A stretch of 64,000 nt of DNA from Guillardia theta CCMP2712 (GCF_000315625.1 NW_005434603.1:186001-250000), one strand, 5' to 3'; counted from the stretch's first letter, positions 2,471 to 53,193 are shown. Notes: generated by a model from the sequence alone, not told the origin. A program made the numbers and translations.

Positions 2471-4479
2471 GAGTCAGTCGCGGCCGAGACTGAAAGGAGA
2501 AACGTAGAGAGTTATGATCAATCGGAAACCATCAACCACATAGCTGCAAGCCTTTGTGTGGAGGAGAGGATCGGACAGGGCAGGGGGCAGGGCACGGCAG
2601 TGAGGGGCAGGGGCATGGCATGGCATGGCATGGCATGGCATGGAATGGCGGAGCAGGAGAAGACTGAGGGGAGCGGAGATGGGGCGAACTTATCGGAAGG
2701 GTTTCAGTAAATGGGATATTGTCTGGCCCGTGTGTAGCACGAGAAAGAGAGCAGAAGGCAAGAACAATTGAGAGTATAGTTAGGCCGGCCCGGGACTGAG
2801 ATGATACTCAATCTAAGACCGGAAGCAAGCCCTCATTTTCTTTTGTTGCATCCAGTCCTATTGATTCTTGTTGCAGTCGCTAAAACGCAGTCTTGTCAGA
2901 GTGGCACGTCTGCATACCGTCCCAAGGCGAAGCTCGTACATTAGAGAATCTTCAGGACTGGTTGACTTGATTCCCATCCGTGACCTCTAGACCACCGAAT
3001 TGAGGTGCACCAGTCCCACAGGAGCTGATCTTGGAAGTTTGAACTCGGAGGCACCTCGCAAGCTCGAGTATGGATTTCTTTCTCCTGGCCTGCACCGGAG
3101 AGAAAAACGTGTTCACGGTGCAGGAGTGTTGCACCCCCTCGTGGACCAGACCCTCCTGGAGCAGAAGCAAATCAAACAGCACGACCCCTCGCTCAGCTGG
3201 GAGGCTGCTGAGCGCTGAGGTTCACGGTCCTCCATCCCGCATCGAGCTCTTCTGCGAGGACCACGAGGAGGAAGAGGGGGAGCTGCTTCCCTCCTCTCGC
3301 CGATTGGCCCCGGTCGCTCTTAAACCTGCCACTCACGGAAATCACCAGCAGGCTTTCCACCAGAACCTCTGGAGCTCCAAGGCGGCAGCAGAGCAACCGG
3401 ATCATAATGGGCCTGCTCTCGATCGCATCGAATCTGAGTCCATGCTCCTGCACCAGCTCCAGCCCAGCAACCCAACCACAGCTGAACCGACTCCGCGATC
3501 TGTCAACTTCTCGAGGAACCACACGCCGAGGCAGACGCGTGAGGCGGCGGCCCAGCCCAGCAGGTCGGAGGCTTCGAGGGTGTCAAAGGCGCAGGACGTG
3601 ATCCTGATCGAGTGAGTGGAGGAGTGACGGCAGGAGCATCTCTAACGATCTCTGGCCCCGCAGGTGCGACATCGTGTCCCCTGCTTCAGCTCCCCCGACG
3701 CACAGGGGTCATGAGGTAGCTGGAGCCTGGTTCGAGGGTGATCCTTACTGGTTCCGCAGGAGAGCCAGGGAGAGGAGAGCAACGAGAGGCAAGAGCAGGT
3801 TCCTTCGCAGGTGGGGATCAAGTTGACTTCCTGGTTGAACTGTGTGACGCGTCCGTGCAGAGCCCGATGAAGCAGGAGGATAGGGAGACGTTCCTGTGGG
3901 CTTGAGGGAGTGCCGGTATCGTGTTGGGATGAGATGAAGAAGTTTGAACACAGAACCTCTCCCTGCCTGCTCGCTTGTCTCATCAGCATCCTGAAGTTGT
4001 CAGCACACGAAAAACAGCAGCGAATGTGTGTGCGTGCGAGCGCGTGCGTGCGTGTATTGGTGGTGGTGAAGGTGGTGCAGGGAGGTGGGAGAGGGGGAGG
4101 GGGGCGGAGAAGGGATAGAGGGATTTGAGTCAGAGTCACTGGCCAAGAGAGCAACTTGGCCTCATGCTATGGATGAATCAACCTTAGAGGCCGCTTGCAA
4201 GACACTGGAAGCAGGCAGTTGCCAGTCACCGTACTATAGTAGGTGACCGGCCCGGCGGCGGGCGGGCCGGGCCACCGGCCGCGGGCGGCCGACCCCCTTA
4301 TCACTGTGATGAATGATGCCTGCCGCCAAAGCTCTTCGCTTCTCCTCAGCTCGCATGATTCGTGACCGCCTCAATCATCGGTGCGGGCTCAGCGTTGCCG
4401 AGCGTCGCCACCGTTGCCACGCGGCTGAGCATAAGAGAGTCTAGAGGGTGAGTCGACTCAACTGCGACTCAACGGCTGA

Positions 4480-6720
4480 GACGGGTAGGAGGGGGGATGA
4501 GGGCTCCTTTTACAAGATTCACCCCCCACCCCAATGGTTATTCTACCCCACCAACTCGAAAGAACCCTACCTACTAAATGGTGGAACCTACCCGACAAAA
4601 AATTTTACCACCCCATTGAAATCGTCTATACCACCCCCTCAAATAACCACCCACCGGATGAATTACAGCCCTGGGTCCTGCAATAACCCTACCTACCTTT
4701 CACAGATCAGATGGCTACACCCATCTTTGTGGATACATTTCGTGCTACCCCTTCGTTGTGGATTGTACCGGTGTATTTGATATCGAAAAAGTCAATAATG
4801 AAGGGGTCAAATTCACAAAGTACTGGTAGGGTGGATTTGGAAATGTCATTCTGGGAGAGTCATGGGGGGTGGGGGTGGAGAGCGTTGTTGCACCTCATGT
4901 TGTGCCTGCTGACGTGCAGTGGAACCACTACCCCCATGGAGATCTACCCTGTATTTACAGTACCCACCCCCTATATCACTTCTGAAATAAGCATACAAGG
5001 GGTACTAATTACCAAGATCCTTCCCACTACAGTACCCGGTAGTAATTCAAAAATACCCCACCCCTTGAACCCCCCTTGTTTTTTAGATGGCCTCCAGATT
5101 CCAGGGTGGCCTCAATTTAGAACGGAAAGGGGCTAGATCTTGGGTAGGGGTAGTCAAACAAGAGACTGCTATCCCTCAAGCGGTACGGGTCCTATGGTAA
5201 ACCTATATTGTGCAGGAAAACCAGGGGTAGAATTTTCATTTTTATGGGGTGATACCACAATGGCGACGGGGTAGGGGGTAGGTGTGATATCAAAGCGAAG
5301 GAACATGACTCGAGCAAAGGGAATTGACCGTACGAATGAAAGGGGGTGGGATGAAGAGATGGCTGAAATCAAGAAGGTACACACTATAGTAATTTTTATT
5401 AGAGACTCATTTGGATTTTCTCATATCTTTTGAGAATAAATTTCCCCTCTGGGTCGATATCTTGTGTGTTTTGAATTACGTGTGGTAGCAAACTGTCACA
5501 GGGTAGTTGCGGATCATGAGGGGTAGGTTGAAATGTTTTCTGTCCAGATGCAGACTAAGGTGGGGGTGATTTTATGGTAAAATAGAGGGTACATCGTTTC
5601 TGAGGTGGGTGAGCTGCCATCGTACCAGGTGGGGTGGATTGTCGAGGATACGCCTCCTAAATACTGTAGAACGGCAAGCCAACAGTTTTTCATCTTCTCC
5701 AAAAACACCCATGTACCCCCATCAAATCCATCTATTTGATATCCGATAGATAGGTAGGGTGAGTCCTCCTGGACCCCTCCAACGACCGTTTCAGAATGCG
5801 GCCCCGATCTGGGATGAGGATTCACCCCCTTATTCCCCCTCAACCACCCACCCCTCGGAAGGCAAGGCCTCGGGGCCCTGGAAGTCTATTTCGTATCATT
5901 TGGTGCCCCGGGCACACCACCCACCCCTTGGTCTCTTGCCGGTCACTGCGCGCATTTCCTCATTTGAGTAGTCCCGAGATGGCTGTAAATGCACAGGGGT
6001 CCTACCTTGAAGTTGGAAGCAAGATAGTATCATATAATATACTATGAAGAGAATCAAGAAAAGTTGTATGATAGTGGTATATGAAACAGGGTCGCCTCAA
6101 GAGCATGCTGTGGTACCGGGTACGGATGCGTCCCGATACTTGGGGTGGATTCGAGCGTAGCGCAGTTCTCGATGACTCAATAAGGGGGTGGAATCCCTTC
6201 CAACAAACTCTACTACCCCTACCCCCTATTTTCGACCCGGATCTATCACCCCACCCCTCAAAGGTGTGGGTAAGACGCGGTCCTTCTACCACTGTGTTTT
6301 CCTCAATGGGCCTCTACCCCTACCCCCATGTACTAACTTCACAAGCGTTACAGAATTTTCAGTAGAACTTTAGAACTACCCCACCCCACCCCCTGAGACA
6401 CAGGATGACCTGCCTTCAACACGCAACACGCTATACACCCCACCTACCACAACCAATCACTTCGTCACCCCACCCTACCTACTTGGTTCAATAATCTCAC
6501 TCTAATACCACCCGACCATATTTTCAAATGCACCTGCAATCACCCCGACCTTCTCCATTACCACCTCCAACCCCACCCCTCGTCATTCCCCCACCCAGCC
6601 TTCTCCATGTACACCCCTTCAGACCTGGACCCCACCTATCTCCAAAATCACCCCCTACCCCACCGTGACCGTAACTGTCCCACAAACGGTTTTTTTTCCT
6701 TTTTTTTTCGGTCTCCTTCC
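4480..6720. other. Apparently non-coding TACC/ACCC-GGTA/GGGT-rich tract
   Basis: Strong enrichment of these words by eye, no convincing ORF, composition unlike the flanking genes. Confidence 0.55.
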
Positions 6721-7701: not shown

Positions 7702-10700
7702 TCAGCTCCTCTTCACGTTGACGCTGGCGAACTTGTGGGTCCCCCTGAAAGTATGAATCCTGCGCAGGATGTCTCGCTGCAACCAGGAGGGATCAGTCGA
7801 GTCAGAGGGCTCCGGGGCCTCCTCCTCACCTTTGTGGTGATGCCGACCAGCGCGCCGTTGCGAACGACGAGGACGTAGCGGAGGCGCAGAGCTCGGAAGG
7901 CGTCGATGACGCGGTTGAGAGGAGTGGTCTCTACGATCTGTGAGAAGGAAAGTTGGGAAAGTCAGTTGGACAGGATGGGATGGGAACATCAGCAGATGAG
8001 GCAAGGAACTTCTGTCCCTGACATCTCAGATTCCAATGGTAACCCTCGATCCTCCCCGCTCCTCTTCCTTCTCCGCTCCTCTGCTCCCCCCGCTCCTCCC
8101 ACTCCATACACCTCCTTCCCCTCCTCTTTCTTTCTGCTCTCCGCAACATCTTCATCCTCCCTCCGCTCTCTTCTCCTTACCTGGATCGGGCTTTGGTCGA
8201 GCCAGGGGTTGAAGTCGAGGTAGGGGGCGTTGCGGGGGAAGGGCCTATCGTTGGTGAAGAAGCACTGGGTAGCGTCTGTCATGTCCGGGGTCTTAGCGTT
8301 GAGCACGGTCTCCAGGTTGGCACGTGAGATGTAGCCGATCAGTTGCATGCTGTCCATGGACTTCACGATGGGATACCCGCTGAACTCTGGTGAAGAGAGC
8401 GAGTGAGGAGGAGCGCAGAAAGAGAATGGGAGGGAGAGGGGAGAGTGGAGAGAGGGAGAGGGAAGAGAGGGAGAAGACGAGAGAGAGGAGACACTGACCT
8501 GTTGTGTTAAGGAGGTTGGCGATGCTGCCGTAAGTGTTTCCTGTCGCATTTATGACGCACAGATCCCTTGACTTCATGACGTCTGCTGCCGTCTCGTTGA
8601 AGACAAACTCCATCTTGTTGTTGAGGTAGGGATAGTCGTGAAGAATGATGAGCTCGTCATAGATTCCTGTCAGACTGGTGAGATGCAGGCGCAGGAGGAG
8701 ATTTGCGGAGGAGAAGAATGGGCAACGTCATCCATGAAAGGAGAGTGTCGGAGCAAAAGAGAAGGAGAGAGGAAAGCAAAAGAGGACGAGGAGGTAGAGG
8801 AGAAGCGATAAGGTCTAAGTAAAGAACGAAGTGTTGAAGGAGGAGGAGGGGGAGGAGGAGCAAAAGAACGAGGAGGAGGAGTTCGGTTCCAACCATCGCG
8901 GCCGAAGGCATCGGAGACCCACTTGGCGACGAGGATGCAGATGGTGGTGGGCATGATGTAGTCGATGCCGTCAGTGAGCTCGAAGATGATGACAACGAGC
9001 GAGACTGTCATCCTTGAAACAGCCGACAGCATGGCAGCTGACCCGATGATCGCGTACACCCCCGGGGTGATACAAGGGTCGTGCCCTGCGCACTCTGCGA
9101 AGAAACCGACGTCTCCTACTCGCTCCTTCGATGACATCGCGTCAGAGAAGGAGGATGGAGTCACAAGCGACAAGACAAGAGGAGGACAGGAGATCAGCTG
9201 AAAGGGCACACTGACGAAACTTCCTCGACCCTATCGATCCCTCCCCAACTCCTCCTTGCTCCTCGCCTCCACTCCTCTCCTCATCTCCCTCCGCATTCCT
9301 CCTTCCCCTCCCCGCTCATGTCCCCTCTGCCTCACCTGCACTAGACTCAAGCAGAAGCCGAAGACTCGTCCCAGACAAGCCCCGACGGCCATGGAGGGGA
9401 CCATGTGCCCTCCCGGCACGATGGTGTTGGGACCGAAGATGGTCAGGATGAACTTGATGAGCGCACAGGCGAGGAGGAAGATGATGATGTTTGATGCGTC
9501 GCTTTCCACGCAGAGCTGAAGAATGCAGAGTGAGGGAGGATGGTAGAAGACGAGGAAGAGGGAAAGGAGTTAGTAACAGAGAGGGGGGGAGGAAGGGGGG
9601 GGGGGGGGGGAAAGAGAGAGGGGGAAGCGATAAAAAAAGAGATGGAGAGAGACAAGGGGGGAAGAGGGGTAAAGGAAGAGGTGTGAGGGAAGGGGGGGGG
9701 GTGAGAGAGAGAGGGAAGAGAGTGGGAAAGGACATAAAGATGAGAATACATGGAAAGAGCAGCCAACATAAATCGTAGAGTGAGGAGAAATGTGTGAAGC
9801 AAAGGGCAAAGGCTACAAGTCAAACCTGGTCAACCGTTGCGTTCGTCTCATACTTGCAATCCGAGTACAGAGCGGCAAGAAGATCCTGCAAGAAATATGA
9901 GCAGCCCGTTGCCGTATCGGGTTGCCCACACCACCTCCCATCCCTCCACCTTCACTGTTCTCCACTACTCTTTCGTTTCCTCTCCTCTCCTCTCCTCTCC
10001 TCTCCTCTCCTCTCCTCTCCTCTCCTCACCGTTGTATCCATCCTCAGAAAAGTTGAAAGATAGGTCGCCGATGCCGAGAGAAAGGAGACAACTGCAGCCT
10101 GCAGAGACCCTCAGGACTGTCCTCTCTCCACTCCTCCCCCCTCCTCTCCTCTCCACTCCACTCCTCTCCTCTTGCCTGCCCTCTCCAACCCTACCTCATA
10201 GAGAGGATGGCGGGCTATGCGGGTAGTCTGGCGGAGGTAGGCGTATCGCACCATGAGCTTGAGGAGGAGAGTGCCGAGGAGCCCGCCGATGGCCCCGAGC
10301 ATGACGAAGATGGGCAGCTCGAACCAACCGAACGCGTAGTGGTAGGTGATCTCGAAGGCCACCAGCTTGCCGCTATGCAGGGGGTCGATTCCTCTCAGCG
10401 TGATGGCGGCGACGATGGCGCAGTAAAAGGAACGCCAGATTGTCTGAAGAGAGAGGCGTGAGAAGAAGGAGGAGGAGGAGGAGACTTCAAGGAAAGGAGG
10501 AGGGGGGGGCGGAGAAAACAAGGCAAGGGAGGAGGATGGGGTGGAGGGACGTCACTGACCTTGGGGGGGAAGTAGGAGCTCAGCATCTCCAAGCTGAAGA
10601 GAACTCCTCCTACAGGGGCTCCGAAGGCAACGGAGATGCCGGCAGCGGCAGCACCGGACAGCAGTTCGCGCTTCTTGACCTCTGACGTGGCGTACTTGGA

Positions 10701-11453
10701 GAAGTAGCGGGAGCTCACGTTGGCGACGCAGCATGCGATGTGCACGTAAGCCGCTTCTAGCCCAACGCTGAGCCCCGAGGCCACGGACAGGACGAGGGCG
10801 ACGCTCTTGATCAACAGCACGCGTCCTCCTAGGTAGCCCTTCATCACAAACCCTCCCAGGATGGTCTTGATCTCAGGGATGCCGGACCCCGACGCGAAGG
10901 GAGCGAACGTCTTCACCAGCCAGGCCGACCAGGTTCCCAGCACAGTACACCAGAGCATGTAGAGGAGGTAGTCGAGGCCGTACCCCCGGTCCCTCTTGCC
11001 GCTCCCGGGCAGGCCCATGAGGAACTCCGACCATGTCCTCCACTGCCAGCACGAGTCCTCGTCCTTGGATATCCTGCAGCACTCCTTCCTCGAGTTCCAG
11101 AACCCTCCCTCGCTGCAGTAGCCGAACTTGAGGTCAAACGCCCACTCCCTCGACACCTGAATCATCCCAGCAAGCAGGCCTGTGAAGAACCCCACGATGA
11201 GGAACACAAACCAGCCCTCCCCTGCTGTCAGGCTGTCCGACAGGATCCTCCTCCACTTGCTCCGTGACCGGTGCCGCATCTGCCTGCTCTTCTGCAGCGC
11301 CTCTCGCAGCAGCCTGTCCCTCTCCGCCCCGAACTCCCAGTCCACCGTCTCGAAGGTGCTGGCGGTAGCCGACACCAGCTTCGATGCCGAAGTGCCATAC
11401 GCAATGTCCCCGGAGCTCTTCTTGAGCAAGCTGGCGCTCTCTGACTCTGCCAT
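7702..11453 (-). CDS. CLC-family anion channel/transporter (CLC-3/4/5-like scaffold) with C-terminal CBS pair
   Basis: [36 protein letters not shown] and CBS motifs (SGYPIV, LVGITTKRDIL). Exons traced by GT-AG: 11453-10560, 10443-10195, 10098-10030, 9885-9826, 9515-9336, 9125-8894, 8666-8499, 8386-8181, 7937-7830, 7776-7702. Confidence 0.93.
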
Positions 11454-21822: not shown

Positions 21823-22099
<277 letters not shown>

Positions 22100-22308
22100 T
22101 CAGCGGGACATCATGTCGCGCCACTCGCAGTAGAACTCGTGGAAGCCTGCCTTGGTCATGATGTCGTAGAAACCCCGCAGGTGGATCTGAAGTCGCAAGA
22201 TCTCAAGTCAATCGCAGCTGAAGGCGCAGGCAGGCAAGCAGGCAGCGCAGCAGAAGCAGCAGCAGCATGATGATGATGATGAAGAGGAGAGGATGAGGTG
22301 GTGGTGGT

Positions 22309-22357
<49 letters not shown>

Positions 22358-25300
22358 AGTTTTGTTTCTCTCTGCTACCTGAACCTCAATGATGTAGCGC
22401 TCAACCGTGCCCTGCTCCCATTCCTCCACAGGGAGAAAGACGACGCTGTTCCTGTTGAACGTCCAGCCGACCTCGAGGTGCAGGGAGAGGTCGCGGTAGC
22501 CAGTCATGGGGTTGAAGACCTTGCTGCTGGAGTGAAAGCGATTCTTGACGTGAGTAATGCGGAAGAACTTTTCTTTCTTGGTCGTCGAGCTCTCAGTCCT
22601 GACCAGCTTCTGCCGCTCCTCATCGCCTGCCCACCTGTCTCTGTTGGTCAAGAAGCCGTTGACATAACTCTGAACATGCGACACGACTCGGCGATGGAAA
22701 GATCCCCGGGTGGTACTCAGGGGCTCGCTGTCCCAAGAGCTGGTTCGTTCTTCTCCCATAACCGACATGATCGTCTCGTCCGCAGGGTTCGCAGGTTCGA
22801 TGCCGACTAGCGATCGCTCCCGGATCAAGTTGAGCACCTGCAGCAGCTGCTCGACAGTCTCGGCGACGATGGTGCAGCGGACAAGATCTGTCAGGCAACC
22901 CACGTCGCGCCGGTACGAGCGCACGCACTTCTCGATGGCTCGTTGGGGTTGCTTCACGGGACCATAGATGAGCATCGGGTACTTGCCGACGGTCAGCTGC
23001 GAGCTGCCATGCCGGACTTGGAGGGGAGCGAGGAGGTCAGAGAGGAGGTCGTGAACGGCGGAGTTGATGGTGCTCGCCTGCTCGTACAGCTGGTCCAAGT
23101 TGGAGGAGACTTGTCGGATCTTTCCGCTCGACTGTGAGCCCTCGGCCGCCTTGAAGCGCCCGAAGCCCTTGTTCCTGAGCTGCCAGAAACGCTTCCATGG
23201 GTGCACGCGAGATCGGCAGTGGTGAAACTGCCGGACGAGCTCCTCCTCCACCTTGGACGTGACCTCCCACAGCTGCTGCAGTGGCCCCCGAGTGACTTGC
23301 TGATCGACGATCGCGATAGGATGAAGTCGTGAGCTGCTGTGCAGCATCCTGAAGGTGCTTCTCCTGTCGCTAACGCTCTTCTCCTCGTCGCGCTCGCTGC
23401 TGTGGTCGGCACCTCCCGAGAGGGAAGTCGCCTGCAGGCAGTTTTCCCAAACTTTGCGGTACTGCTGAACGTTCAACCCCAGCTTCTTCCGGGCCACCCG
23501 GATGGTGGTGACGCGGATGACAGCAAAGTACACGAAGAGACCAAACGTGAAGATGGACGTGAATAGAGTCATCAGGAAGTACAAGGGATACTCCCTCCAC
23601 AGGTAGGAATAAGTTACAGACAGCACGAATGCTACAAGTAACCAGGAAGGAATCCAAAACTCCTCCCGGTACTCGAAGACCAAGTACACGAACGTGGAGG
23701 CTGGTATGAACATCAACAGCTCGAACGCTGTCCCATTCACTGACAGGGTGTCGGCTACTGTCCAGCCAGGCTGGTGCTTTCCCGCCAGGATCTGGGCGAT
23801 TTCTGCGGCTACTCCAATGAGGAACATGAAGTTGATACGGAAGATTTGCTTCTTGAGCGTCGCACACGCCTTGTGCGGTCGGACGTATCTTGCTTCAAAG
23901 ACGGTCTTGAACAGCGTGATCGAGGTGGATGCCCATAACGGCAGGTAGTAAATGACCTTGAACCACAGGATCACCCCAAAGTCCTTGGACTGCCAGGTGG
24001 TCAGGGAGTCCATCTTCAACTCAGTCAGGGGCACAAGGCAGACGACGGCAAGCACAGCACACATCACTTGCCCCTGCCACTTTGAGATTACAATCTCAAT
24101 GGCGTTGGTAGTCCAGACTGCAGTTCCGATGGCTGTCGTCGAGTCTTTGAAATCGAGCAACCTCTGAGAATATCGGTTCGATCTCTTCTGTCCCTTCAGC
24201 TCTGCGATGGCCATTCGGAGTGCGACTTCTTGACCTTTTCGGCATGAGAACAAATCTTGGCCTTCACGTTCTGATGCGAACATCTCATGAACGTCGTTGT
24301 CTGTCAGGTTGGCTGCCTTATACAGCGAGTCGACATGGTGCTTGACAAGCATGTGAGAAAGTCCTAGGAGGCCGCACTCCTCCAGCCACTGCAGCACCTC
24401 GAGTCCTCCCGGAGTCTTGAAGGCAAACTCGTTGGGATCGAGCAGAAGTCTTTCGAGGTCGCGGATGACAACGTCGAGTATCTTCCCAGCGCAGTAATCA
24501 AGGAACTGCTCGTCCGGCTTCATCTCGGACGGTTTGCAAGCCTGGTGCTTGAGAATCATCTCCACAGTCTGCTTGATTGTCCTCTGCTTCATGCTCTGGA
24601 TCTGCTTCTCGTCGACGTCGAGCATCGACAGGATCGCAGCAGCTCTCTCGTTCGTCAGCACCGAAGGCCTCTCCGGCAGCATACGGATGCCCGACCACGA
24701 GAATTCGGAGAACGTGCCATCGTCTCCTCTGGGGCCAAGGAGGATAGGGAAGATGGATTGCAAGTGTGTGCCCTCCTTGCGGCACCACTCGATGGCGATG
24801 ATGTACTCCAGCAGGACGTTGTCGATTCGATCTTCTTCAGCAAGCGACAACAGCTCTCCGAGGGACCCCTTGAACCTCTTGGCTCCCGTCGTCTCGTCAG
24901 TTTCCACGTAGAAGGACAGTACAGGGACGAAGAGCAGCGAGTGCGCCAACCCGAGCACCAGCCCTGCCTCCCAGTCCTTGCCGTTCTCCAGGCAGCGCTT
25001 GTCAAGAAAGCCCTTGACCCCACTCTCTGCCTGCGCCGTCGGCTTCTTGACGCACCTTGGCCAGGTCCCTTTTGCTCCGAAGGGCAGGGGCTTCTTGTCA
25101 TTGGAGACTCGGGTGATCTCGTCGTACAGTCCTTCCACTAGCTCCTCCTCTGTCGACACCCTGTAGGACAGGAAGAAGTGAAAAAGCTCTGCTCGCAGAC
25201 TGCGCAAGGGTCGTGGCTTCCCCGTCTGTATCGTGGGGGAAGGAGGGGTCAAGCTTGTTGTCTGCACGCTGGATGAAGTAGTCTGGATGTTAGGATGCTG

Positions 25301-25387
25301 AACCCTTTGGGAAAGAGGCAAGCACAGAGCTGGGATGTTACCTTGCTCGACCCCAAACCCGCTCACGTCTTCGTGAACTCTATCCAT
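22100..25387 (-). CDS. TIR - SAM - 6 TM - RelA/SpoT-like nucleotidyltransferase fusion protein (about 1031 aa)
   Basis: Exons 25387-22379 and 22186-22100. TIR: FFLSYR..FLDKRCL..GKDW..LFVPVLS..DNVLLE..IFPIL. SAM: VLQWLEECGL..HHVDSL..LTDNDV..GQEVALRMAI. Six hydrophobic segments. Synthetase-like: GPVK..RAIEK..DLVRCTIV..KNRF..GYRD..EVQ|IH..HEFY. Confidence 0.75.
22308..22356 (+). repeat. Intronic (CAG)n microsatellite
   Basis: Lies inside intron 22378-22187; explains the spurious poly-L and poly-Q in the ORF track. Confidence 0.9.
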
Positions 25388-26689
25388 CGCGGTGACCTTG
25401 GGTGGGATGTATACTCTCAAGTGTTACGCTGACGCCAGTCTTCAATGTGTTGAGAAATAATTTCGCAATGAGTGCAGCACTTGCTTTGTATCCAAAGGAA
25501 AGCTCGGGGAGGGAAGGGTCGCTCGAACAAAGTAGACAAGGAAGAAGCTGTCGAGTGATAGCGTTGAAGGACTCTGTAAGACTAGAGGAGGGTTGCAGTC
25601 GCTGGGATCAGGACCACCTGAACTTACTGAAGCTTAACTCGAGGGCTTCTGTAAGGGACGGGAGCTCAGCGTCTTGCTGGGAGACAAGCATCCGATGATC
25701 TTCCGCATCGCCTCGCACTGTCAGGGCGGCTCCAGCTGTCGTAAACTGAAGTCGGAACAAAACGTGTCAAAAGGGAAAAGGGGGGGTGGTGGACTGATGC
25801 CCGGCCCCGTTTCCACTCCTGGAGGCCCAGTGACCTGTTGATTGTCCTCGTACTAATTTTTGACTTAACTTTCAGTGAGTAAACTTGCCCCGACAGTTCC
25901 GTTCAACTCGAGTCTGTTTTTCGTCACGCCGTCGCGACTTAATTTCGAGTAAAGTTCAAAGGTAGTAACTTAACTTGGCTTTGAATCATCCGAAGGCAGG
26001 TGCCACGGTCACGCGCCCGGCCAGGCCCCGGGCCGCGCAGCCCGGGCCGTCACAGTGACAGTGAGACTCAGTCGCGCCGCCGCGCGCCCGGCGGTCCGTC
26101 ACGTGACAGTGTAAACCAAGACGACTGACGTGTCCGACGGTCAAGGCGGCCCGGCCCATGTAGTAGCCGGCGTGTGGGCCCGACGAAGCCTCGGAGGGGG
26201 CTTTCCTAGCCGTCTTGCTAAGGTCCTCTCATGTCTGGATGCTCCGGGTTTCACATCCTAGCATACAGTCTACAGTGACTGAGTCACGAGTCAAGTTTTG
26301 TGTGCATTAAACTCGGTTTTGAGCAAAAATTGTCTTGTTGCAACTAAGGTCGATGCCACGGTCCGATATCTGCGTGACTGCGCGCCGAGCCGCTCGGAGA
26401 CTCAGTGCCCGGCCCGGCGGGTCGGGCGCCGTGAGCCGCACCCGGCCGCCGCCCGCGTCACAGAGTCAAGTCCGAACTTCCCGTTCAACCGTTGAACCCG
26501 GGCCGGGAGGGGCCCGGCCGGCGAGTCCCGGCGGGCCCAGGCGGCGGGCGGCCCAGAGCCTCCGAGACTCCGGATTGTTAGGATCATCATGAGGGTGGGC
26601 ACCGGAATGCCAGTCGTCACCGGTCGTCATCAGAGTCATGGCAGCACTCGGGGTCCAAAGGACGGGTGGTTTCGCTGAAAAGCTATTGA

Positions 26690-28630: not shown

Positions 28631-30639
<2,009 letters not shown>

Positions 30640-43386: not shown

Positions 43387-45486
43387 TTACTCAAGAGGAG
43401 TCAGAAAGCTAGTCGTTGTGGGCTGATGTCCAGCCATTGACCCTTCAGACGGGCACTTGGCGCAGAAGGAAGAAAAGTTCGTCTCTTGTTCTTGTTCCTC
43501 CAGTGTCAGCGTGCTGCTTGTATCTTGACCGTCGTCGCTCCCCCCTTGCTTCGTAGAGGCACTGACTGCAATGAAAGAGATCGTCTGATCTGCCCCTCCT
43601 CTCTCCCCCACTTGCTCCATCGGGAGGTACCCGGTAAGGTCTCGATACCCCCCAACCTCCCAGTTTGACTCCGCCATCTCGATCAGCGCTTGTACGGCAG
43701 AGAGCATGTGATCTGCAGGGAGGAAGCTCAGCGTGAATTTCTCGTGTTCGTGCGCAGCATTTCGTTCCACCCCCATCAGGATTTGTTGGTCTGCGCTCCT
43801 AAAGGTCCCCAGGGCCATTTTTCCGGGTCGGGACAGGATCTCCTCTATCCACCGGCAGACGTCCTCTGCCTCTTCCGTCACTTCATGTACAACTCTGCGC
43901 AGCTCTTGCCCCGAGCAGCGGATCGTGTTGGGTTGATGCTTAGACTCCACGTGGCACATGAAGGGCTCCTTTGGAACCAAGTCCTCCTCGCGCTCTGTCG
44001 CGTCTGATATTCTGTTGTCCACCGCCCCCAGCCTGGCCTGTTGTTGATTGCAGATTCGATTGAAAAACTCCTGATCTTCCTCCATGCAGGCTGCCTCAAA
44101 TCTCTCAATCTTGCTACGCATCTCCAACTGCAGCTCAGCCTCTGAGGAGTCCAGCTCCGTCCTGGATGACGTTGTAGTCCGGGAGAGCTCAGCGAGTTCG
44201 CGTCCGAGGCTGAGCTCGCTCATACCTCGCTGCGGCTCCATCGGTTCTTCGTTGCTGCATCCCTCTTTTGCGTGCCGTCCTGCTGAATCTTCTGCATCGA
44301 GTATCATGACATTGACCTGCTGTTCTCCCCATGCCTTTGGATCACGCACACTACTGCAGGTAAGTGCAGTCCTCTGAACTTTGCCGCTGCCCCTGGTGTT
44401 TCTTCGCCTCGAAGTAGCAGGAGAGTTGAAATGAATCAAATCCAACTTTGGAATCACTTGTAATGCGTCAGAGAACTGTGTGTCTACCTGAACCGCTATG
44501 GCTCGATGTTGTAAATATGCACTCGCCACGCCCGCGTGAAAAGTTTGGAACGTGAGCACTATGTTGTGGTGTTCGTCAGCGCCCGGAGGGCTGATAGCAA
44601 GGAAAGCATAGAGTTTCGCCTCTATTCCCCATTTCCAGGGCCGAAAGGAGTCGGAGAAGTAATTGTCCTCAATGCTGGACTCCTCGCACATAACACGCCG
44701 ATCCGCGCCGAGATCCGCAAGGAACTTCGCCATGGACGGGTCCGACCTTGTTGTAGCCGGGGATTCCACCAAGCGTCTCCGCACCACAGTGTCTGTGCTG
44801 AAGGTGGACGCATTGAAGTCCCCTCCTATGAAATGGAGTTGCGTTGTTGCAAGGGAGAACTCTAGCAGAGATCTGAAGAACTTCTCCCGCTCCCTGATTG
44901 CATTCCTGGTAGGGAACTGATGCACGTTCGTGATGATTGCCTTGCCTACTCGCACCGACAAGATTCGATGCGGAAAGAGCATCGTTGGAGAGCGCATGAC
45001 GGGGGCAGGTGCGAGCGCTGCGTGAACGAGGGTGGCCAGGCGAAAGTCGATATACCCATTGGCCTTGGTTGGCTTTCCGTGAGCCATGAAGATCCTGTAG
45101 TAGCCCCAGTTCAGCTTGATAAGCTTGCGCAACTTTGTCTCATGCCGATTGGAGACACAAACGCCTTGCAGGAGGATAATTCCTGGTTTGAAAGGCTCGA
45201 TCAAAGCAGCGAGCACTCGCAGCAGAGTAGCGTGGTCGCAGCCGTTGACATTTTGCGAGACTATGAAGCCTGGCTCCGAGCATCTCTGCTGAATTTCCAA
45301 CCAGCTCTCCCGGCTCCTTACCTCAGAGCTCTGTTGCTCCAATGGCTCCTTGCTTTCCCAGTCGAGCTCCGCAGGCTCCCAATCTAGGTTGGTGAAACAT
45401 GTTGGCGGATCTTCCGATGTGTCCTCGTGCGTTTCGAGCTCGCTCTCGCTCGATACTGGATCCTTACACGATGCGTCCTCTTGCAT
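43387..45486 (-). mobile_element. Intronless ORF with a degenerate APE/EEP endonuclease domain, probably LINE-derived; no RT domain seen
   Basis: SQNVNG, IILLQG, RILSV, TNVH, IGGDFNA; several catalytic residues altered. Confidence 0.6.
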
Positions 45487-46211: not shown

Positions 46212-49200
46212 ATGCCCAAGTTCGATGATGAGACGCTGGCGAAGCTGCAGGAGAAGCTCATCGCCGCCGGGTACACGGACGGGGAGTGGAGGAGCATCAT
46301 GCTTGAGCACTATAATGAGGACTACGAGCACATGGCAGAATTTGCGAAGCGGAGGGCGGAGGAGCGAGAGAAGAGGAGGCTGGCCATGGATATATCCAAG
46401 GAAACCAGCTTCCTGTCCTCCCATGGCGCTTCCAGGACGGACCCGGCGCTCACTGGGAACGTGCAAGCTCTGCTCGAGAACACTTTTCAAGATTATTTCA
46501 CCACCCCTCCTGTCTCGGATCAAGATCGGAAGCTTCCTTTTGAGCTTGCCCCGCCCTCCCAGCCCATCTCCCACACCATCGGTACTACTGCGCCGGGAAA
46601 GGGCGGAGTGGCGAGCTCTGGGCCGGTTAGGATCAAGGCGATCATGGAGGAAGAGGAAGAGAAGGAGGGGGTAGCCGAAGAAAAGCCTTCGGAAGAAGCT
46701 CAGGCAGAGGGCGAGGAGGAGGGAGGAGAGACGAAAAAGAAGGCACCTGAGCCCATCGACGAAGACGAGCTTATGTTCATCTGGAACCGACGGGAGGCCC
46801 CGCAGCACCGGCGGCCCAAGGTCGATCAAGCTCTGGAGCAGAAGCTCCAGGATGTGCAGAAGATCGAGGAGACGATGAACGTCCGGCGCAACGAGATCAT
46901 CGAGCAGGACAAGGCGTTCTGGGCCACGATTGGAGTCAGCGACGAGCACCCGGACGGGACCATAGCCTCCGGGCAGTTCTCTCAGTTCCTTGCCAAGACG
47001 GAGAAGAAGCCGACGGCTCTGGTCATGGACGGGCAGCACCAGACAGCTCGCTGGGCTCTGGAGGTGGCAGAGGAGGCCGAGCAACCGGATTTTCGCAGCG
47101 CCATCCTGCCTATCGGACCCCCCAAGGTCGAGCACGACGAGAGCATACTCAAGGAAAATTTCCTCATCAGCACGAGGGCCGACCTGGAGACGATGGAACA
47201 GTCGATGCTGAGAGAGTCGCTGGGCCCTTCGAAGCTGGAGATGCCCCCGGACGCCGACCCGCACTACATGAACACTACCTTCTTCAAGACGGCCCACTCG
47301 ATGAACGCGGCCTCCAAGTCGCCGCGTCCCGACGAGGGCACGATGAAGACCGTGGGGATGCAAACGACGCAGGCGCTGCAGGAGATGGCCAAGGAGACTG
47401 AGCAGAGGATACAAGAGGTGCAGAGGAGGCTGAAGAAGACGATCATCAAGGATGCTGGGGAGAAATTGGACATCCCTGCTATCCTCCTCCGCAAGTTCAA
47501 CTATCTCAAGAATCCTCGCTATAAAGACCCCCCCGTGGACTTCAGGGGGCTGGTGGACAGCATTCAGCAGGGAACGATCAAGGAGGAGACGAAGAAGGGA
47601 GAGGAGACTTTCAGCCTAGTCGGCCCTGCCGTCTTCGTCCCGAAGCCTCAGGTCGTGCAGTTCACTGAGTATGAGGTGGACAAGACGTATGAGCTTCCGC
47701 TGAAGCTGCAGAACGTCACGGGCATCTTGAGGAGGATCAGGATCATGCCCCCAGCCTCGGAGCACTTCTCCGTGTCGCTAGTGAAGTACCTCGGGGAGGA
47801 CGGGCTAGTCGCTCCAGGCATGTACTGCATGGTACACATTCGCTTCAACCCAGACACGCTTGCTGACTACGAAGACACGCTGCACGTGGTGACAGAGAAG
47901 GGGCTGATCGCCATCCCCCTCCTCGCTCGCCGCCTCCCTCCGAACCTGACGCTCCCCGACGTGATCGACATCGGGAACTGCTTCGTGGACGACATGAAGC
48001 GCGTGGTTATCCCGTGCAGGAACCAGGGAGGGAAGGGGCAGTTCATCCTTGTGCCGGACTCAGAGTGGCCCCAGCCGCCGGACGACGTGAAGAATCGGGA
48101 GGTAGTGAGCATGCCCCCGTTCCGCTTCAGCCCGTCGAGCTGGGAGCTCAACGGCGGAGAGGAGCTGGACATCACCGTGGAGTTCTGCCCGGCACGGAAT
48201 GGCAAGTTCTCCGTTGGCTTCCGGCTCGTCTGCGACAACTGCTCCGTGCAGCAGTACCAGCTGGTGGGTACCGCCATCACCCCCTCCTTCCAGCTGGTGC
48301 AGCTGGACTCCCTGCTGGTCGTGCCCCCCCTCTCCGAGATGCTGCGGCCCCGGGTCGACCTCTCGTTCCCCAACCTCGCCCCCGGCGCTTACCAGGAGAA
48401 GCTGGTGACGCTGCAGAACAGGACACCCCTGGAGATGGACTTCAGGTGGGAGGTCGATCATACCCCCACCCCCCACACGAACCTCAACTCGTACGTGAGC
48501 AAGTGGGGTAAGGTCGGGCAGAGCCACCAGGTCTTCTCCATCCTCCCCATCAGCGGCACCTTCGCTCCCAACCAGACTCTCAGCTTCCAAATCCAGTTCG
48601 CTCCCGTCGACTGCGCCGCGTACGAGGGGGTTGCCCGCCTGCTCGTCCCGAACCTCCCATGCCCGAGGGAGGAGGGGGAGGGAGAGGGGGACTTCGGGGC
48701 CTCGGGGTACAGGTACAAGGAGTACGAGATGTCGAGAGTGCAGCTGAAGGGGACGGGGCATGAGTGCGAGGTCGCCATCGACCCGCTGGTGCTGGTGGTG
48801 GCGCAGAAGTTGAGCGTCGGGAAGGTCTACTGTCGACCTGTGACTGTCAGGAACTTGAGTGACGCCCCCGTCTCGATCTCGTGGGAGAAGTATCCCGACC
48901 TGCTCTATCAGACCGTCAGGGTCCTGCCCGACAAGCTCGTCCTCGCTCCGAGGGAGGAGAAGAAGCTCAAGGTCGAGATCGCTCCCAAGGTCGTCGCTCC
49001 CCTGCAGGTAGTCCATCCCTCCCGCTCCTCCTCCCGCTCCTCCCTGGTCTGTTCTAGGATGCTCTTCAATCCTTTCCCTTGCTGTCCCTCCCATCCCTTG
49101 CCTTCTCCTCTTTCCTCTTTCCTCTTTCCTCCTCCTCACCTCTCCTCCAGGTCTCCCTTGCGTGCAACGTAGAGCACGGCTCCTCTCAGATCTTCACTGT

Positions 49201-52200
49201 CATCGCCGAGACGGACGGGCCCCGCGTCCGTATCACCAGCACTCACCTTGACTTTGGGCTGATGCGGGTGGGCTGGAGAGCAAAGAAGAAAATCTCCTTC
49301 CTCAACATCTGCGACGTCTCCGCCCGTTGGTCAGTCTCCCTCTACCGCGCCGGCACCTCCGATCCATGGGGCCCGACCATGACCGTGTCTCCATCCCATG
49401 GCATCCTCGACGCCGGCAAGACGGCGACGGTGGAGGTGGAGTTCCGTCCGGAGGAGCCGGAAAGGATGAGGAGTACGCTGGTGGTGGAGGTGGAGGGAGG
49501 GCAGACCGAGTTCTTGTCCCTGCGGGGAGAGGTAGTGTTCTCCAAGGTGTGCCTCGACACTTCCGTGCTTGACCTCGGGACGATCTTCCTCGCCGTTCCG
49601 GTGACAAGGAGGATCACGATGAGGAACCTGACCCTCCTCCCCTCCACTCCCTTCCGCTGGGACATGCGAACCATCGAGGCGCTGCGGGACCCGAGCACCG
49701 CCTCCTTCAAGCTTCAGTTCAGAGTCGTCGAGGGGATCCTTGGCCCTGAGGAGGAGCAGCAGGTATATGGTGCAACCTGCGCTACTTGAAATCTGACTGA
49801 GCTGTCTCCTACTTGCCTCCTCCTGCTCTTCCTCCCTGTGTCTTCCCTCCTCCTCCTCCCTCCCTTCAGGTCGACATGACCATCGAGGCCATCAGCCTGG
49901 GTGAAGCAACGGAGGAGCAGAGCGCGCTAGAGGAGCAAGGGGAGCAGCTGGGATCGGTCAGCAACCCAGGTGCATAAACACAAGTTCATTCTTCTTCTTT
50001 GCTCTGTACACCTTCTTCCCACTTTTCCTCCCCTCCCCTCCTCTCCTCTCCACTCCTCTCCCCTCCTCTCCCCTCCTCCCCTCTCCTCTCCCTCCTCCCC
50101 TCCAATCTCCTCCTCACCTCCCCTGCAGGCATCCTCAACTCGCTCGTCCCCCTCCACGTGGAAGGCATGCCCGAGCTGACTGGCTTCGAGCTGCGAGCTC
50201 GCGTCATGGGGCTGGCCGTCACCTATCATCTCGGAACCATCGAGAGCATCGAGCCGGTCCCAGACGCGCTTCGTGGGACTCCAGCAGCGCTCAAGGTGGG
50301 GGTGAGGAAGGACTGGCCACGGGAGCTGGTGGGGGTTGAGAGCTCGGTGCCGATCGTGCTGGACTTCGGGGAGAGGAAGATGATGGAGAAGCACAGCATG
50401 ACGTTTGTAGTTCGCAACCACACCGGGATCGAGGCTGCGTTCAACCTCCACGCCGAGGAGTTCGGGGTGCCGGAGCACGAGATGGAGATGATCGCCCGAG
50501 CTGACGCGGGGGAGGAGGCGAGGCCGACAAGAGACCTCCTGCGCGGGTTCTCCTCGGCCTCCAGCACCTCCGACAGGCTGCGCCGGGGAGGAGAGCAGAC
50601 GACCAAGATCAGGTTCGCCGACACGACCATGGGCAAGGAGTCGCAGCCCCTGACGCAGACGCGCGCGTCTGAGAGGACGAGCACTTCCTTGAAGCCTTCC
50701 TCGGCTCCTCGCTCTCGCAAGCACACCGGCACCATCGCCTCCATCAGAATGGGAGCAACCATGCAGCGAGCGGTCTCGACCGGCCCGGCAGGAAGGTCCT
50801 TGACGCAGGCAGAGATCGCGATGAGGAAGAACCGAGTCAGCGCGCCCTACGTGAAAGACGCAGAGAGGCAGCTGGACGCGGGGCTGAGGAGGGGGCATGC
50901 GAGCATCCAGCTCCTTCAGTCCTCCAAGGTCAAGGAGGAGAACACTCGCCTCCGGTCCACCGCGCTCTGGTGCTTGCCAGGGGACCACTCGTCCATCGCC
51001 TCGCGTGGACGGTCGCACACGGGGCAGCAGGCAAGCAAGCTGATCCTCTCGGACGACCACGAGGAGGTGGAGAGGTTCCGGTCGATGCACGGGCAGAAGC
51101 TGCTGAACCAGAGGAGCGCGGCGCAGGAGGCGTTCAGGATGCTGGAGGGCGGGAAGGGCTTCGCTGTCACGTGCTCCACCTACACCGGGAGGATCGAGCC
51201 GTGGGGGGAGGTGGAGGTGCGAGTGGACCTCTTCTCAGATGTTTGCGGCATCTTCAGGGACAGGCTGGTGGTCGAGGTGATCGGCCTTCCGGTCGTGCAC
51301 ATCCCCGTGCTGGGGAAGCTGGTGGGGTCCCCGGTGGGGATGGAGGGGGGGTCCCTGGGGCTGAACCTCCTGGGGGAGGTGCCCTCAGTGGACTTTGGGG
51401 ACATCCTGATCAACGGGCAGAGCCAGACGCGGTCGCTACGGGTGAGGAACTCGTCGCCATGGCCCCTCCTCGTAGACTGGCAGCTGCTGGAGTCAGCTCC
51501 CCCCAACGAGAAGAACCTGATCCAGCTGAGCTCCGTGGTGGGCGAGGACGGGACCGTCTCCTACCAGCTCGCCGCCGTCGAGCCTCCGGAGGCCAAGAGC
51601 ACTCCCTTTACCCTGACGCCTCACAGAATGGCGATACCCGCTCACTCGACCAAGACCGTCGACGTCTCTTGCCAGTGGCACAAGCCCCAGCACCACGACA
51701 ACTTCCTGGTAGGCTCCGTCTCCTTCCTGTCCAAGGACATGGAGGGCAGCCTGGCAGAGGTGGAGGAGGAGGGGGCGGAGCTGCTGCTGGAGGAGCTGCG
51801 GGATCGGGAGACGGCGAGCGTGGCGGATTTACAGGAGAGGGCGACGGGGATGGAGCTGGTGGACGTCGAGCAGCTCGTGCTCGCCCTGCGCTGCGAGGTG
51901 ACGAACGCGAGGCTGGAGGCAGACTGCCACAAGCACCTCAAGTGGATCTGCAGCTCCTCCAACGACTGGAGGTCGCACGCGTCCTACGTGAAGGAGCTCG
52001 TGCTGTCGAACCGGGGAAGGTGCAACCAGACCTTTGCGCTCAAGACCAACTCCCCCTTCTCCATCGACTCCACCGTCTGCACTGCCCCCGTCCACCCCAT
52101 GGCGCGGGCAGGAGACATCGACCCTGCCTCCTCAAAGCCGCAGCTGTTCATCCTCCCGCCCAAGGACAATCTGGTCGTCCGCGTGCGCTTCACCCCCCCG

Positions 52201-53193
52201 AGCAAGCATCGCTCAGGGCGCGTGGTGGATGACCAGGTGCTGTTCGGGGAGCTTGTCATGCTCTTCAGCAACGAGGAGGTTCAGAGGATCGAGCTTGAGG
52301 CTCAGATCAAACACCCACAGCTGGACATCTTGCCGGAGGAGCTAAATTTCAACACCCTCCATGTTGAGTCGACTGCCGTCCTGACCCTCGCGCTCTGCAA
52401 CCCGACGTATGCCGATGCTCACTTCAAAATCGTGCACGCCCCCAAGCTCCTCACCATGACCTCCGCCCTCCACGCGGAGGGATCCTCCTCCAATTTCAAA
52501 GGTGCGGCTGCTCTCCTCCCCTGCCCTTCTTCGTATGCCATGCTTGCCGCTACTTGCAGCATGCTCATGATTGTCCCCCATCCCTCCCTCTTTCCCTCCC
52601 TGTCTCCCTGTCTCCCTCCCTCCCTGTCTCCCTGTCTCCCTGTCTCCCTCCCTGTCTCCCTCCCTCCCTCACTCACTCCTTCCCTCCCTCCCTGTCTCCC
52701 TCCCTCCCTCACTCACTCCTTCCCTCCCTCCCTGTCTCCCTCACTCACTCACTCACTCACGTCCCTACCTCAACCTTCCTTTCTTCCTGACTTGCACGCA
52801 GCCCTCACAGCCCGCACGGTGGAGACAACGGTGGACGACGCCGAAGTCTTCTCCTTCGAGCCTCAGTCGGGCGTCATCCGAGGCAACCTCCTCCGCCCCA
52901 CCATCCCCGAGTCAGTCATCCTCACCGTCCGCTTCAACCCCAAGAAGAACGTGGACTACAGGAGCCGCTTCAAGGTTGAGATCGAAGGAGGAAGGGGAGG
53001 CTACTTCACCCTGCTAGGCTCTGGATCCTACGACGAGAGCAAGGAGCCAGGAGGAGCAACAGGCATCATCCGTGATCACCCGGGCTTCCATCCCCTCATG
53101 ACCGGCGTCCGAGGACCGATCGTGCCCGGGGAACAGGAGCGGGGGGCAAGGCCGTTGGCTCCTCCTCCTCCGATGAGTCTGCCGTCCTGGTAG
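46212..53193 (+). CDS. DLEC1: DLEC1/FAP81-like central-apparatus protein with multiple ASH (Ig-like) domains
   Basis: NYLKNPRY, VVQFTEYEV..LQNVT..PPASEHFS..GLVAPGM..ARRLPPNLTL..IGNCF; repeated DFG/V.N.S ASH patterns; introns near 49008-49150, 49762-49869, ~49900-50127 and ~52502-52801. Confidence 0.82.

Follow-up and report, generated by a model that had tools for sequence, protein, structure and literature searches.

A predicted six-pass membrane protein of Guillardia theta joins a SARM1-type TIR domain, a SAM domain and a divergent RelA/SpoT-like domain in one polypeptide

Scaffold C71 of Guillardia theta CCMP2712, of which we analyzed nucleotides 186001-250000 (the window, 64,000 nt; all coordinates without a scaffold or locus name are counted within it), carries on its minus strand the gene GUITHDRAFT_113953 (22100..25387; a two-exon coding sequence of 1031 codons plus stop). 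Its product, hereafter P0001, is predicted to be a six-pass membrane protein exposing to the cytosol a SARM1-type TIR domain, a SAM domain and a domain resembling the synthetases of the RelA/SpoT homologue (RSH) family. Taken jointly with the mechanism proposed below, we consider this account moderately probable. The domain identities, catalytic residues, predicted topology and gene model are strongly supported by the structural and comparative evidence that follows, and the two terminal domains may both be active enzymes, coupled to each other and serving in immunity. The gene is already modelled in GenBank, where its function is unannotated; NCBI labels the product hypothetical and UniRef describes it only as 'SAM domain-containing'.

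The C-terminal domain, proposed to be RelA/SpoT-like in an initial annotation made from the sequence alone, spans residues 763-1031, with residues 763-1003 encoded by exon 1 (22379..23101, minus strand). An AlphaFold model of residues 700-1031 (predicted local distance difference test, pLDDT, 79 overall and above 90 in the core) displayed the RSH synthetase fold, a polymerase-beta-like nucleotidyltransferase fold, and when it was compared with the PDB using Foldseek, all of the best 50 matches were RSH synthetases. Structural searches with VIA gave the same picture, led by RelQ/SAS1 (Z 14.3, root-mean-square deviation (rmsd) 2.8, 153 residues) and continuing with SAS2/RelP (Z 14.1-12.4), Rel (11.8), CapRel (11.1) and Tas1 (10.3); in total, 25 RSH entries scored between Z 14.3 and 9.2, against at most 7.9 for the next fold, TdT. 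At the sequence level, the family profile recovered a single solved protein from the PDB sequences, Tas1 (E 6.6e-6). All of the motifs listed for this domain in the initial annotation, GPVK..R..EK, DLVR.TIV (read as DLVRCTIV), KNRF, GYRD, EVQ|IH and HEFY, were present in the translation and in the collinear order expected of RSH synthetases.

To place these motifs on characterized enzymes, we used hhalign with a canonical RSH alignment composed of E. coli RelA, SpoT and six plasmid-borne RSH genes, which yielded 147 collinear columns at E 2e-4. Here, the lysines of RxKxxxSxxxK were matched by K812 and K820, RelA D275 by D834, the GY loop by G963-Y964, the ExQ that contains RelA E335 by E1001 and Q1003, and HxxYK by Y1022; synthesis by RelA requires both D275 and E335. 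Hence, the basic ATP-binding residues, the Mg-binding Asp and Glu, the GY loop and HxxY are all found in P0001, within GPVK(812)..R816..K820..R823, D834-LVR837, G963-Y964-R965 and E1001-V-Q1003. Ten residues (K812, R816, K820, R823, D834, R837, R965, E1001, Q1003 and R1026) were invariant in 39 relatives that share 24-67% identity. The gathering score of PF04607 (27 bits) was not reached by any of these proteins, P0001 giving no match and the best relative 20 bits, and 5 of the 39 showed sub-threshold but collinear matches. Because the fold matches and the catalytic residues are both aligned and invariant, the domain looks like an active ATP-dependent pyrophosphokinase, and the catalytic Asp and Glu expected of a RelA/SpoT-type enzyme are conserved.

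Two further elements surround or interrupt the RSH-like core. After the last transmembrane (TM) segment, a linker of residues 627-762 (23102..23509, minus strand; ratio of nonsynonymous to synonymous substitution, dN/dS, 0.26) begins with a poorly conserved stretch and ends in a confidently modelled helical hairpin, which packs against the catalytic domain (helices 2-27 and 31-39 of the P0001:700-1031 model, pLDDT ~95). Within the domain, residues 865-940 (22568..22795, minus strand) form a 76-residue variable insertion that is probably disordered (pLDDT below 50-65); it varies in length or is absent in relatives, and its dN/dS of 0.67 indicates near-neutral evolution.

Toward the N terminus, residues 68-308 (24464..25186, minus strand) form a SARM1-like TIR domain with ~100 aa of insertions in total and a C-terminal helical extension. 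The TIR identity proposed in the initial annotation stands on both fold and catalytic glutamate, while the range given there (~25185-24730) covered the core only, the domain extending over 25186-24464. An AlphaFold model of residues 60-420 (pLDDT 93.6, predicted template-modelling score 0.88) adopted the flavodoxin-like TIR fold. Foldseek returned plant TNL TIRs and the SARM1 TIR as the top PDB matches, all at probability 1.00, and VIA, which is independent of Foldseek, ranked the SARM1 TIR first (Z 13.6, rmsd 2.5 Å, 140 of 140 residues, 26% identity), followed by the TIRs of TIRAP, IL-18Rb and MyD88 (Z 11.8-13.2) and also C. elegans TIR-1 (23% identity). P0001 did not reach the Pfam gathering score for TIR or TIR_2 and gave no TIR match at E<=1. 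Of 51 relatives, 9 matched TIR_2; two relatives that share this layout exceeded its cut-off of 28 (P0028, 34.2 bits; P0034, 28.6 bits).

The predicted catalytic glutamate of the TIR, E194, lies on the alphaC helix within the motif DNVLLEY (codon at 24806..24808, minus strand, placed by arithmetic within the intron-free exon 1). It was invariant among 46-51 relatives, as was the family motif D..DNVLLE. In a BLASTP comparison with the TIR of a second G. theta protein, L1IYH1 (23% identity, E 1e-6), E194 aligned to catalytic Glu1141, and the TIR profile located the L1IYH1 TIR in the G. theta genome on scaffold C63 (locus L025) with E 1.5e-15. In a 2026 preprint, this L1IYH1 TIR is reported to make cyclic ADP-ribose (cADPR) and to deplete NAD+ in E. 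coli, the Salpingoeca rosetta TIR F2UB80 is likewise reported to make cADPR, and the activity of every TIR tested there is said to have depended on the catalytic glutamate (10.64898/2026.04.20.719644, whose Table S4 gives the L1IYH1 construct and Glu1141). Together, the profile match, the BLASTP score and the alignment of E194 with Glu1141 thus place the TIR of P0001 in the same subfamily as a TIR reported active, and by analogy it may act as an NAD+ glycohydrolase or cyclase. The HMMER alignment of a deeper TIR profile to SARM1 (E 0.03) was mis-registered and was not used for residue mapping. The L1IYH1 TIR is encoded at L025:3851-4528 (G000:C63) and has a close paralog on C33 (L024 ~4210-4900); neither has an RSH-like match nearby.

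The conservation of both active sites bears on the alternative that the RSH-like domain binds nucleotides without catalysis and serves as a regulator gating the TIR, or that the TIR is a mere scaffold. Such a pseudoenzyme would be in keeping with the divergence of both domains beyond Pfam thresholds and with the displacement of the canonical DxxGxR arginine, which in P0001 is found in DLVR, as in Tas1. However, the Mg-binding Asp and Glu, the Lys/Arg cluster and the TIR glutamate are invariant across 39-51 diverse relatives, dN/dS relative to a paralog on scaffold C229 is ~0.1 in every folded module (0.15 for the gene overall), and the G. theta TIR of the same subfamily is reported active. We regard a pseudoenzyme as very unlikely.

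A single SAM domain follows the TIR at residues 325-409 (24161..24415, minus strand), where a SAM-like domain had been proposed at ~24403-24195. It shows the five-helix SAM fold and, in VIA searches, matched the SAM domains of Caskin2 (Z 8.1), p73 (Z 7.7, rmsd 1.4 Å) and EphA5 (Z 7.4); the family profile also matched SAM structures with E values down to 1.4e-4. Among the relatives, Pfam detected SAM_2 in 10 of 51 and SAM_1 in 7 of 51, P0001 alone being below Pfam detection. It may mediate homo-oligomerisation or clustering.

Downstream of the SAM domain, hydropathy revealed six hydrophobic segments that are conserved in orthologues, at residues ~438-456, 470-493, 515-536, 552-572, 577-596 and 601-626 (23510..24076, minus strand), in agreement with the six proposed at ~24070-23515. 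Counts of Lys plus Arg (6 ahead of TM1; 2, 6, 1, 1 and 1 in the successive loops; 6 past TM6) fit an arrangement in which both the N and C termini are inside. In four metagenomic relatives (P0028, P0074, P0154 and P0128), an F5/8-type-C (discoidin) domain sits in the TM1-TM2 loop, immediately behind TM1, and the RSH-like C terminus is retained, a receptor-like layout. A discoidin domain is expected to be extracellular. Its position right after TM1 therefore supports an in-to-out orientation of TM1. The even number of segments, the positive-inside charges and the relatives' discoidin domain together predict, as the initial annotation had suggested, that both enzyme modules likely lie on a common cytosolic side. 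P0001 itself has no ectodomain, and its membrane domain has no detectable relative, an ESM Atlas feature search with the TM region returning no usable match. Residues 415-437 (...TAIGTAVWTTNAIEI..., 24077..24145, minus strand), immediately ahead of TM1, are near-invariant in orthologues and probably form an amphipathic cytosolic helix; the counterpart in discoidin-bearing relatives is polar (..GAQNQLEV..KK..) and ends in Lys. A seventh TM segment at this position was considered and rejected, since the homologous stretch in relatives is polar.

The RSH-like domain is complete only if the gene is spliced. A 1070-codon open reading frame (ORF) extends over 22208-25420 on the minus strand, and the two-exon model put forward initially (exon 1, 25387-22379; intron, 22378-22187; exon 2, 22186-22100) reproduces the 1031-aa NCBI/GenBank protein exactly. 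Exon 1 (22379..25387) was read directly from the sequence, agrees with P0001 in translation and encodes residues 1-1003, ending in ...IIEVQ. A (CTG)n microsatellite lies in the 192-nt phase-0 GT..AG intron (22187..22378), which also has a stop codon in frame at 22210-22208. Exon 2 (22100..22186) encodes residues 1004-1031 plus the stop, an IH...HEFY...WRD tail which completes the RSH-like domain. The EVQ|IH junction is formed only by splicing, as had been noted, and without the terminal exon the ExQ...HxxY motif is incomplete.

The opposing possibility is that the gene model is wrong, with exon 2 unused, a low-complexity read-through end or a pseudogene. In its favor, 0 RNA reads fell on the gene outside its CTG repeat (22241-22363) in ~6% of one raw-read RNA run, so that reads give neither splicing nor expression support, and the homologue entries P0003-P0006 read through after EVQ. 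Read-through in G. theta GUITHDRAFT_113953, however, would add only a CTG-repeat-encoded tail up to the in-frame stop, and the comparative record speaks for splicing. In the C229 paralog (L002, 66% identical), ...EVQ is likewise followed at exactly this codon boundary by a GT..AG intron, here of 44 nt, beyond which lies an exon of 87 nt; retention of this intron would shift the frame, and the introns of the two genes are unrelated in length and sequence. Exon 2 is 82% identical to its counterpart in the paralog (pN, the proportion of nonsynonymous differences, 0.09; pS, synonymous, 0.67), giving a dN/dS of 0.06. Moreover, the tail motif [IV][HR]...H..Y..[WF]R[DN] continues uninterrupted after ExQ in >30 relatives, including proteins derived from MMETSP transcripts and many intron-free G. 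theta paralogs. Because the paralog shares the intron site, exon 2 is under strong constraint (the dN/dS of 0.06) and intron-free and transcript-derived relatives keep the tail, the comparative evidence that the terminal exon is joined by splicing is strong, and an erroneous model seems to us highly improbable. Two repeats lie in and beside this end of the gene: a (CTG)n/(CAT)n-type repeat at 22241-22363 occupies much of the intron, and a long GCTCT-type pentanucleotide microsatellite lies at 21910-22050, just 3' of the stop codon. In the TIR-coding region, one Logan contig of run X10 has an extra G after 24730 that other runs lack; it is probably an assembly error, as the site sits on a contig junction. 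The three sequencing runs that contain this stretch appear to be DNA from the genome project.

Standard searches recover little of this protein. No Pfam TIR, SAM or RelA_SpoT match was obtained for P0001 or its five closest homologues, phmmer with the whole protein against PDB sequences returned noise only, and a six-sequence TIR profile gave no match in the PDB. By searching 1.84 billion representative proteins with the family profile, we recovered 1271 at E<=1e-3, of which 356 reached E<=1e-10; many of the 1271 have only some of the modules. Domain alignments were built from these matches for the C-terminal domain (A6, n=39), for TIR plus SAM (A7, n=51) and for the TIR (A8, n=46). Homologues of P0001 over its full length number six (41-66% identity). 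The named family members belong to Guillardia and Hanusia, and the remainder are metagenomic. No relative was found on viral contigs scanned with the six-sequence alignment, and structure matches in BFVD were restricted to phage RSH-like modules. By these profile matches, the gene is part of a large family missed by standard annotation.

In the G. theta genome, the A6 profile gave 161 matches representing at least 70 domain copies. The copies lie mostly in ORFs of 800-1500 codons, many of them in ORFs of 1000-1500 codons, some with two copies and some in local tandem gene arrays (examples are C206:46651-57039, C1:833992-843210 and C30:477356-529487, with others on C62, C86 and C12), and most lack the intron after ExQ. 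The TIR profile gave 13 matches, ~11 of which adjoin an RSH-like match (on C71, C229, C49 twice, C4 twice, C339, C16 and C117 twice), such that G. theta has ~11 genes with the TIR-to-RSH-like layout. Elsewhere in the family, the partners found alongside SAM and TM segments are discoidin, or a protein kinase with a HEPN-like region. Structure neighbours in the ESM Atlas included RSH-like domains joined to TPR or ankyrin repeats, as well as a bacterial cluster carrying RelA_SpoT. One ENA metagenome scaffold encodes an intron-free relative of 1443 aa (P0068, L015:2743-7074) in which a protein kinase domain, a SAM-like region and six hydrophobic segments accompany the RSH-like domain, together with a weak HEPN_DZIP3-like match. 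Canonical RSH genes (HD_4 plus RelA_SpoT) occur in G. theta at two loci, C47:131263-132737 and C24:131220-132315, and a search of the genome for HD_4 hydrolases found none beyond these two and thus no HD_4 expansion.

Because the family is large and modular, an ordinary receptor-type second-messenger role is a serious rival to an immune one, and ordinary signalling and immunity are about equally probable. Here, the RSH-like domain would be the output module of a large cryptophyte receptor family and the TIR would add cADPR-type signalling, much as other protists possess receptor-type nucleotide cyclases. The many copies in mostly long and sometimes tandem ORFs, the linkage of a TIR to only ~11 of them, and the discoidin ectodomain after TM1 or the protein kinase domain of relatives all suit this explanation. 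On the other hand, P0001 lacks an ectodomain, lineage-specific expansion and domain shuffling suit immune families equally, and no expansion of HD-type hydrolases was seen that would switch such a messenger off. Furthermore, it is as effectors of death or defence that SARM1-type TIRs and RSH enzymes of the Tas1 or toxSAS type are best known. We judge a purely receptor-type role possible but rather doubtful; the second-messenger and immune roles are not mutually exclusive.

In the mechanism we favor for the membrane protein with its TIR, SAM and RSH-like modules, input would arrive through the membrane domain or through clustering, because P0001 has no ectodomain. SAM-mediated clustering in the membrane would bring TIRs together, and the clustered TIR would cleave NAD+ to nicotinamide and ADP-ribose or cADPR. 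The RSH-like domain would bind ATP-Mg through its Lys/Arg cluster, D834 and E1001 and move the beta,gamma-pyrophosphate onto the 3'-OH of an acceptor. The likeliest acceptor would be a purine nucleotide, to give a (p)ppGpp- or (p)ppApp-like product as in Tas1 and small alarmone synthetase (SAS) enzymes; a tRNA 3' end, as with CapRel, would be less likely. In a response to stress or infection, such activity may yield a nucleotide signal in the cytosol or, if high, deplete NAD+ and ATP.

The tRNA acceptor defines a distinct explanation, in which P0001 would be a translation-targeting suicide effector that halts the infected cell, the RSH-like domain pyrophosphorylating the tRNA 3' CCA in the manner of CapRel, FaRel2 and PhRel while the TIR depletes NAD+. 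CapRel (Z 11.1, 10.8) and FaRel2 (Z 6.6) are indeed among the structural matches, and the ATP-binding and catalytic residues are common to all RSH synthetases. By sequence, however, the nearest enzyme is Tas1, which pyrophosphorylates nucleotides, and the closest folds are those of RelQ and RelP. There is no C-terminal antitoxin-like extension, only 28 residues following ExQ, and a membrane-tethered enzyme would be awkward as a tRNA modifier. We find this explanation improbable.

Several observations weigh against the proposed six-pass TIR-SAM-RSH-like enzyme. P0001 itself has no significant match in Pfam, NCBIfam or PADLOC, and the hhalign probability against canonical RSH was only 46%. The displaced DxxGxR arginine also counts here, as do the 0 RNA reads in the fraction of one run. 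The number of TM segments comes from hydropathy and not from a fold, and the acceptor site is not readable from sequence. Lastly, since HD_4 is confined to the two canonical RSH genes, a dedicated enzyme that would degrade a new alarmone is not evident in the G. theta genome.

On a broader scale, we tentatively suggest that cryptophytes use a large unannotated family of membrane receptor-type RSH-like pyrophosphokinases to make cytosolic alarmone-like nucleotides, and that its TIR-SAM subfamily may link NAD+-derived (cADPR-type) and pyrophosphorylated-nucleotide signalling in one polypeptide, a signalling or immune logic without a characterized counterpart. If the RSH-like domain is active, alarmone-type chemistry would operate on a large scale in a eukaryotic cytosol, with dozens of membrane-anchored RSH-like enzymes in one alga that are invisible to Pfam-based surveys. 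The fusion would also represent a concrete link, in a eukaryote, of the two best-known nucleotide-based defence chemistries of bacteria, the TIR/Thoeris-like and the toxSAS/Tas1-like.

Elsewhere, the window encodes a CLC chloride channel (10395-11453, minus strand), a SNF1/AMPK-like kinase with AID (29023-30087, plus), an Exo_endo_phos (exo/endonuclease-phosphatase) family protein (43387-45486, minus), a polycystin-domain protein (56753-57703, plus) and a DEAD/DEAH helicase (DEAD-box; 60753-62834, minus). Two long ORFs on the plus strand (46212-49172 and 49999-53193) encode CFAP65/hydin/ASH-type Ig-like domains and probably belong, as exons, to a single large gene for a flagellar protein. No clustering with relatives of GUITHDRAFT_113953 was seen in its flanks. 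A defence island was considered and rejected, as these neighbours are ordinary eukaryotic genes.

Among known systems, SARM1 and C. elegans TIR-1 resemble P0001 in the TIR, that of SARM1 being the best structural match, with the same Glu-bearing helix and a SAM adjoining the TIR. SARM1, however, is a soluble, mitochondria-associated ARM-SAM-SAM-TIR protein, whereas P0001 has the order TIR-SAM, a single SAM, no ARM, and six TM segments and an RSH-like domain thereafter, and unlike SARM1 its TIR carries ~100 aa of insertions; P0001 is thus not a SARM1 orthologue in layout. The TIRs of L1IYH1 and F2UB80 share with it the motif D[NH]VL[LM]E[WY] and the C-terminal helical extension, L1IYH1 being a different gene (G000:C63) of 1337 aa with the TIR at residues 1049-1273 and no RSH-like match near the locus.

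For the RSH-like domain, the (p)ppApp synthetase toxin Tas1 of the Pseudomonas aeruginosa type VI secretion system (PDB 6ox6) shares ..P[IV]K..[EQ]RA.[EQ]K...D....L.DL.R.T[IV][IV] and the shifted Arg, at VIA Z 10.3 and 20% identity. Tas1, however, is secreted as a toxin by bacteria and is paired with a cognate immunity protein, while the P0001 domain is the cytosolic tail of a predicted eukaryotic membrane protein and contains the 76-aa insertion. RelQ/SAS1 and RelP/SAS2, the best fold matches (Z 14.3-12.4, rmsd 2.6-3.5, ~155 residues), have the Asp, Glu, GY loop, ExQ and HxxY in common with P0001, yet they share only 15-18% identity with its domain, which is below the PF04607 threshold and is not a free-standing tetrameric enzyme. 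With toxSAS, CapRel and FaRel2, P0001 shares the fold (CapRel Z 11.1) and the concept of an RSH enzyme as a shut-down effector. Unlike those defence systems, it has neither an antitoxin gene nor a fused C-terminal antitoxin-like domain, the protein ending 28 aa after ExQ among ordinary neighbours and giving no PADLOC match.

Nearly all other known eukaryotic RSH proteins are plastid (p)ppGpp enzymes, Mesh1 hydrolases or a few unexplained divergent SAS (PMC3153485), among them the 'divRel' SAS, unplaced synthetase-only RSH proteins in fungi, Dictyostelium and diatoms (PMC3153485). Fungal NLRs are also listed as having RelA_SpoT as one of the effector domains at their N termini (10.1101/2022.03.16.484565). 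Both groups are PF04607-detectable and soluble or NLR-linked, and, unlike P0001, none is described with TIR, SAM or TM segments. Our search of the literature accessible to us likewise turned up no account of TIR-SAM-TM-RSH proteins or of eukaryotic RSH enzymes anchored in a membrane, in line with the initial annotation, which knew of no characterized protein of this architecture. Relative to these systems, we rate P0001 as a variation on known kinds, in which the combination of domains is new and the RSH subfamily both new and divergent.

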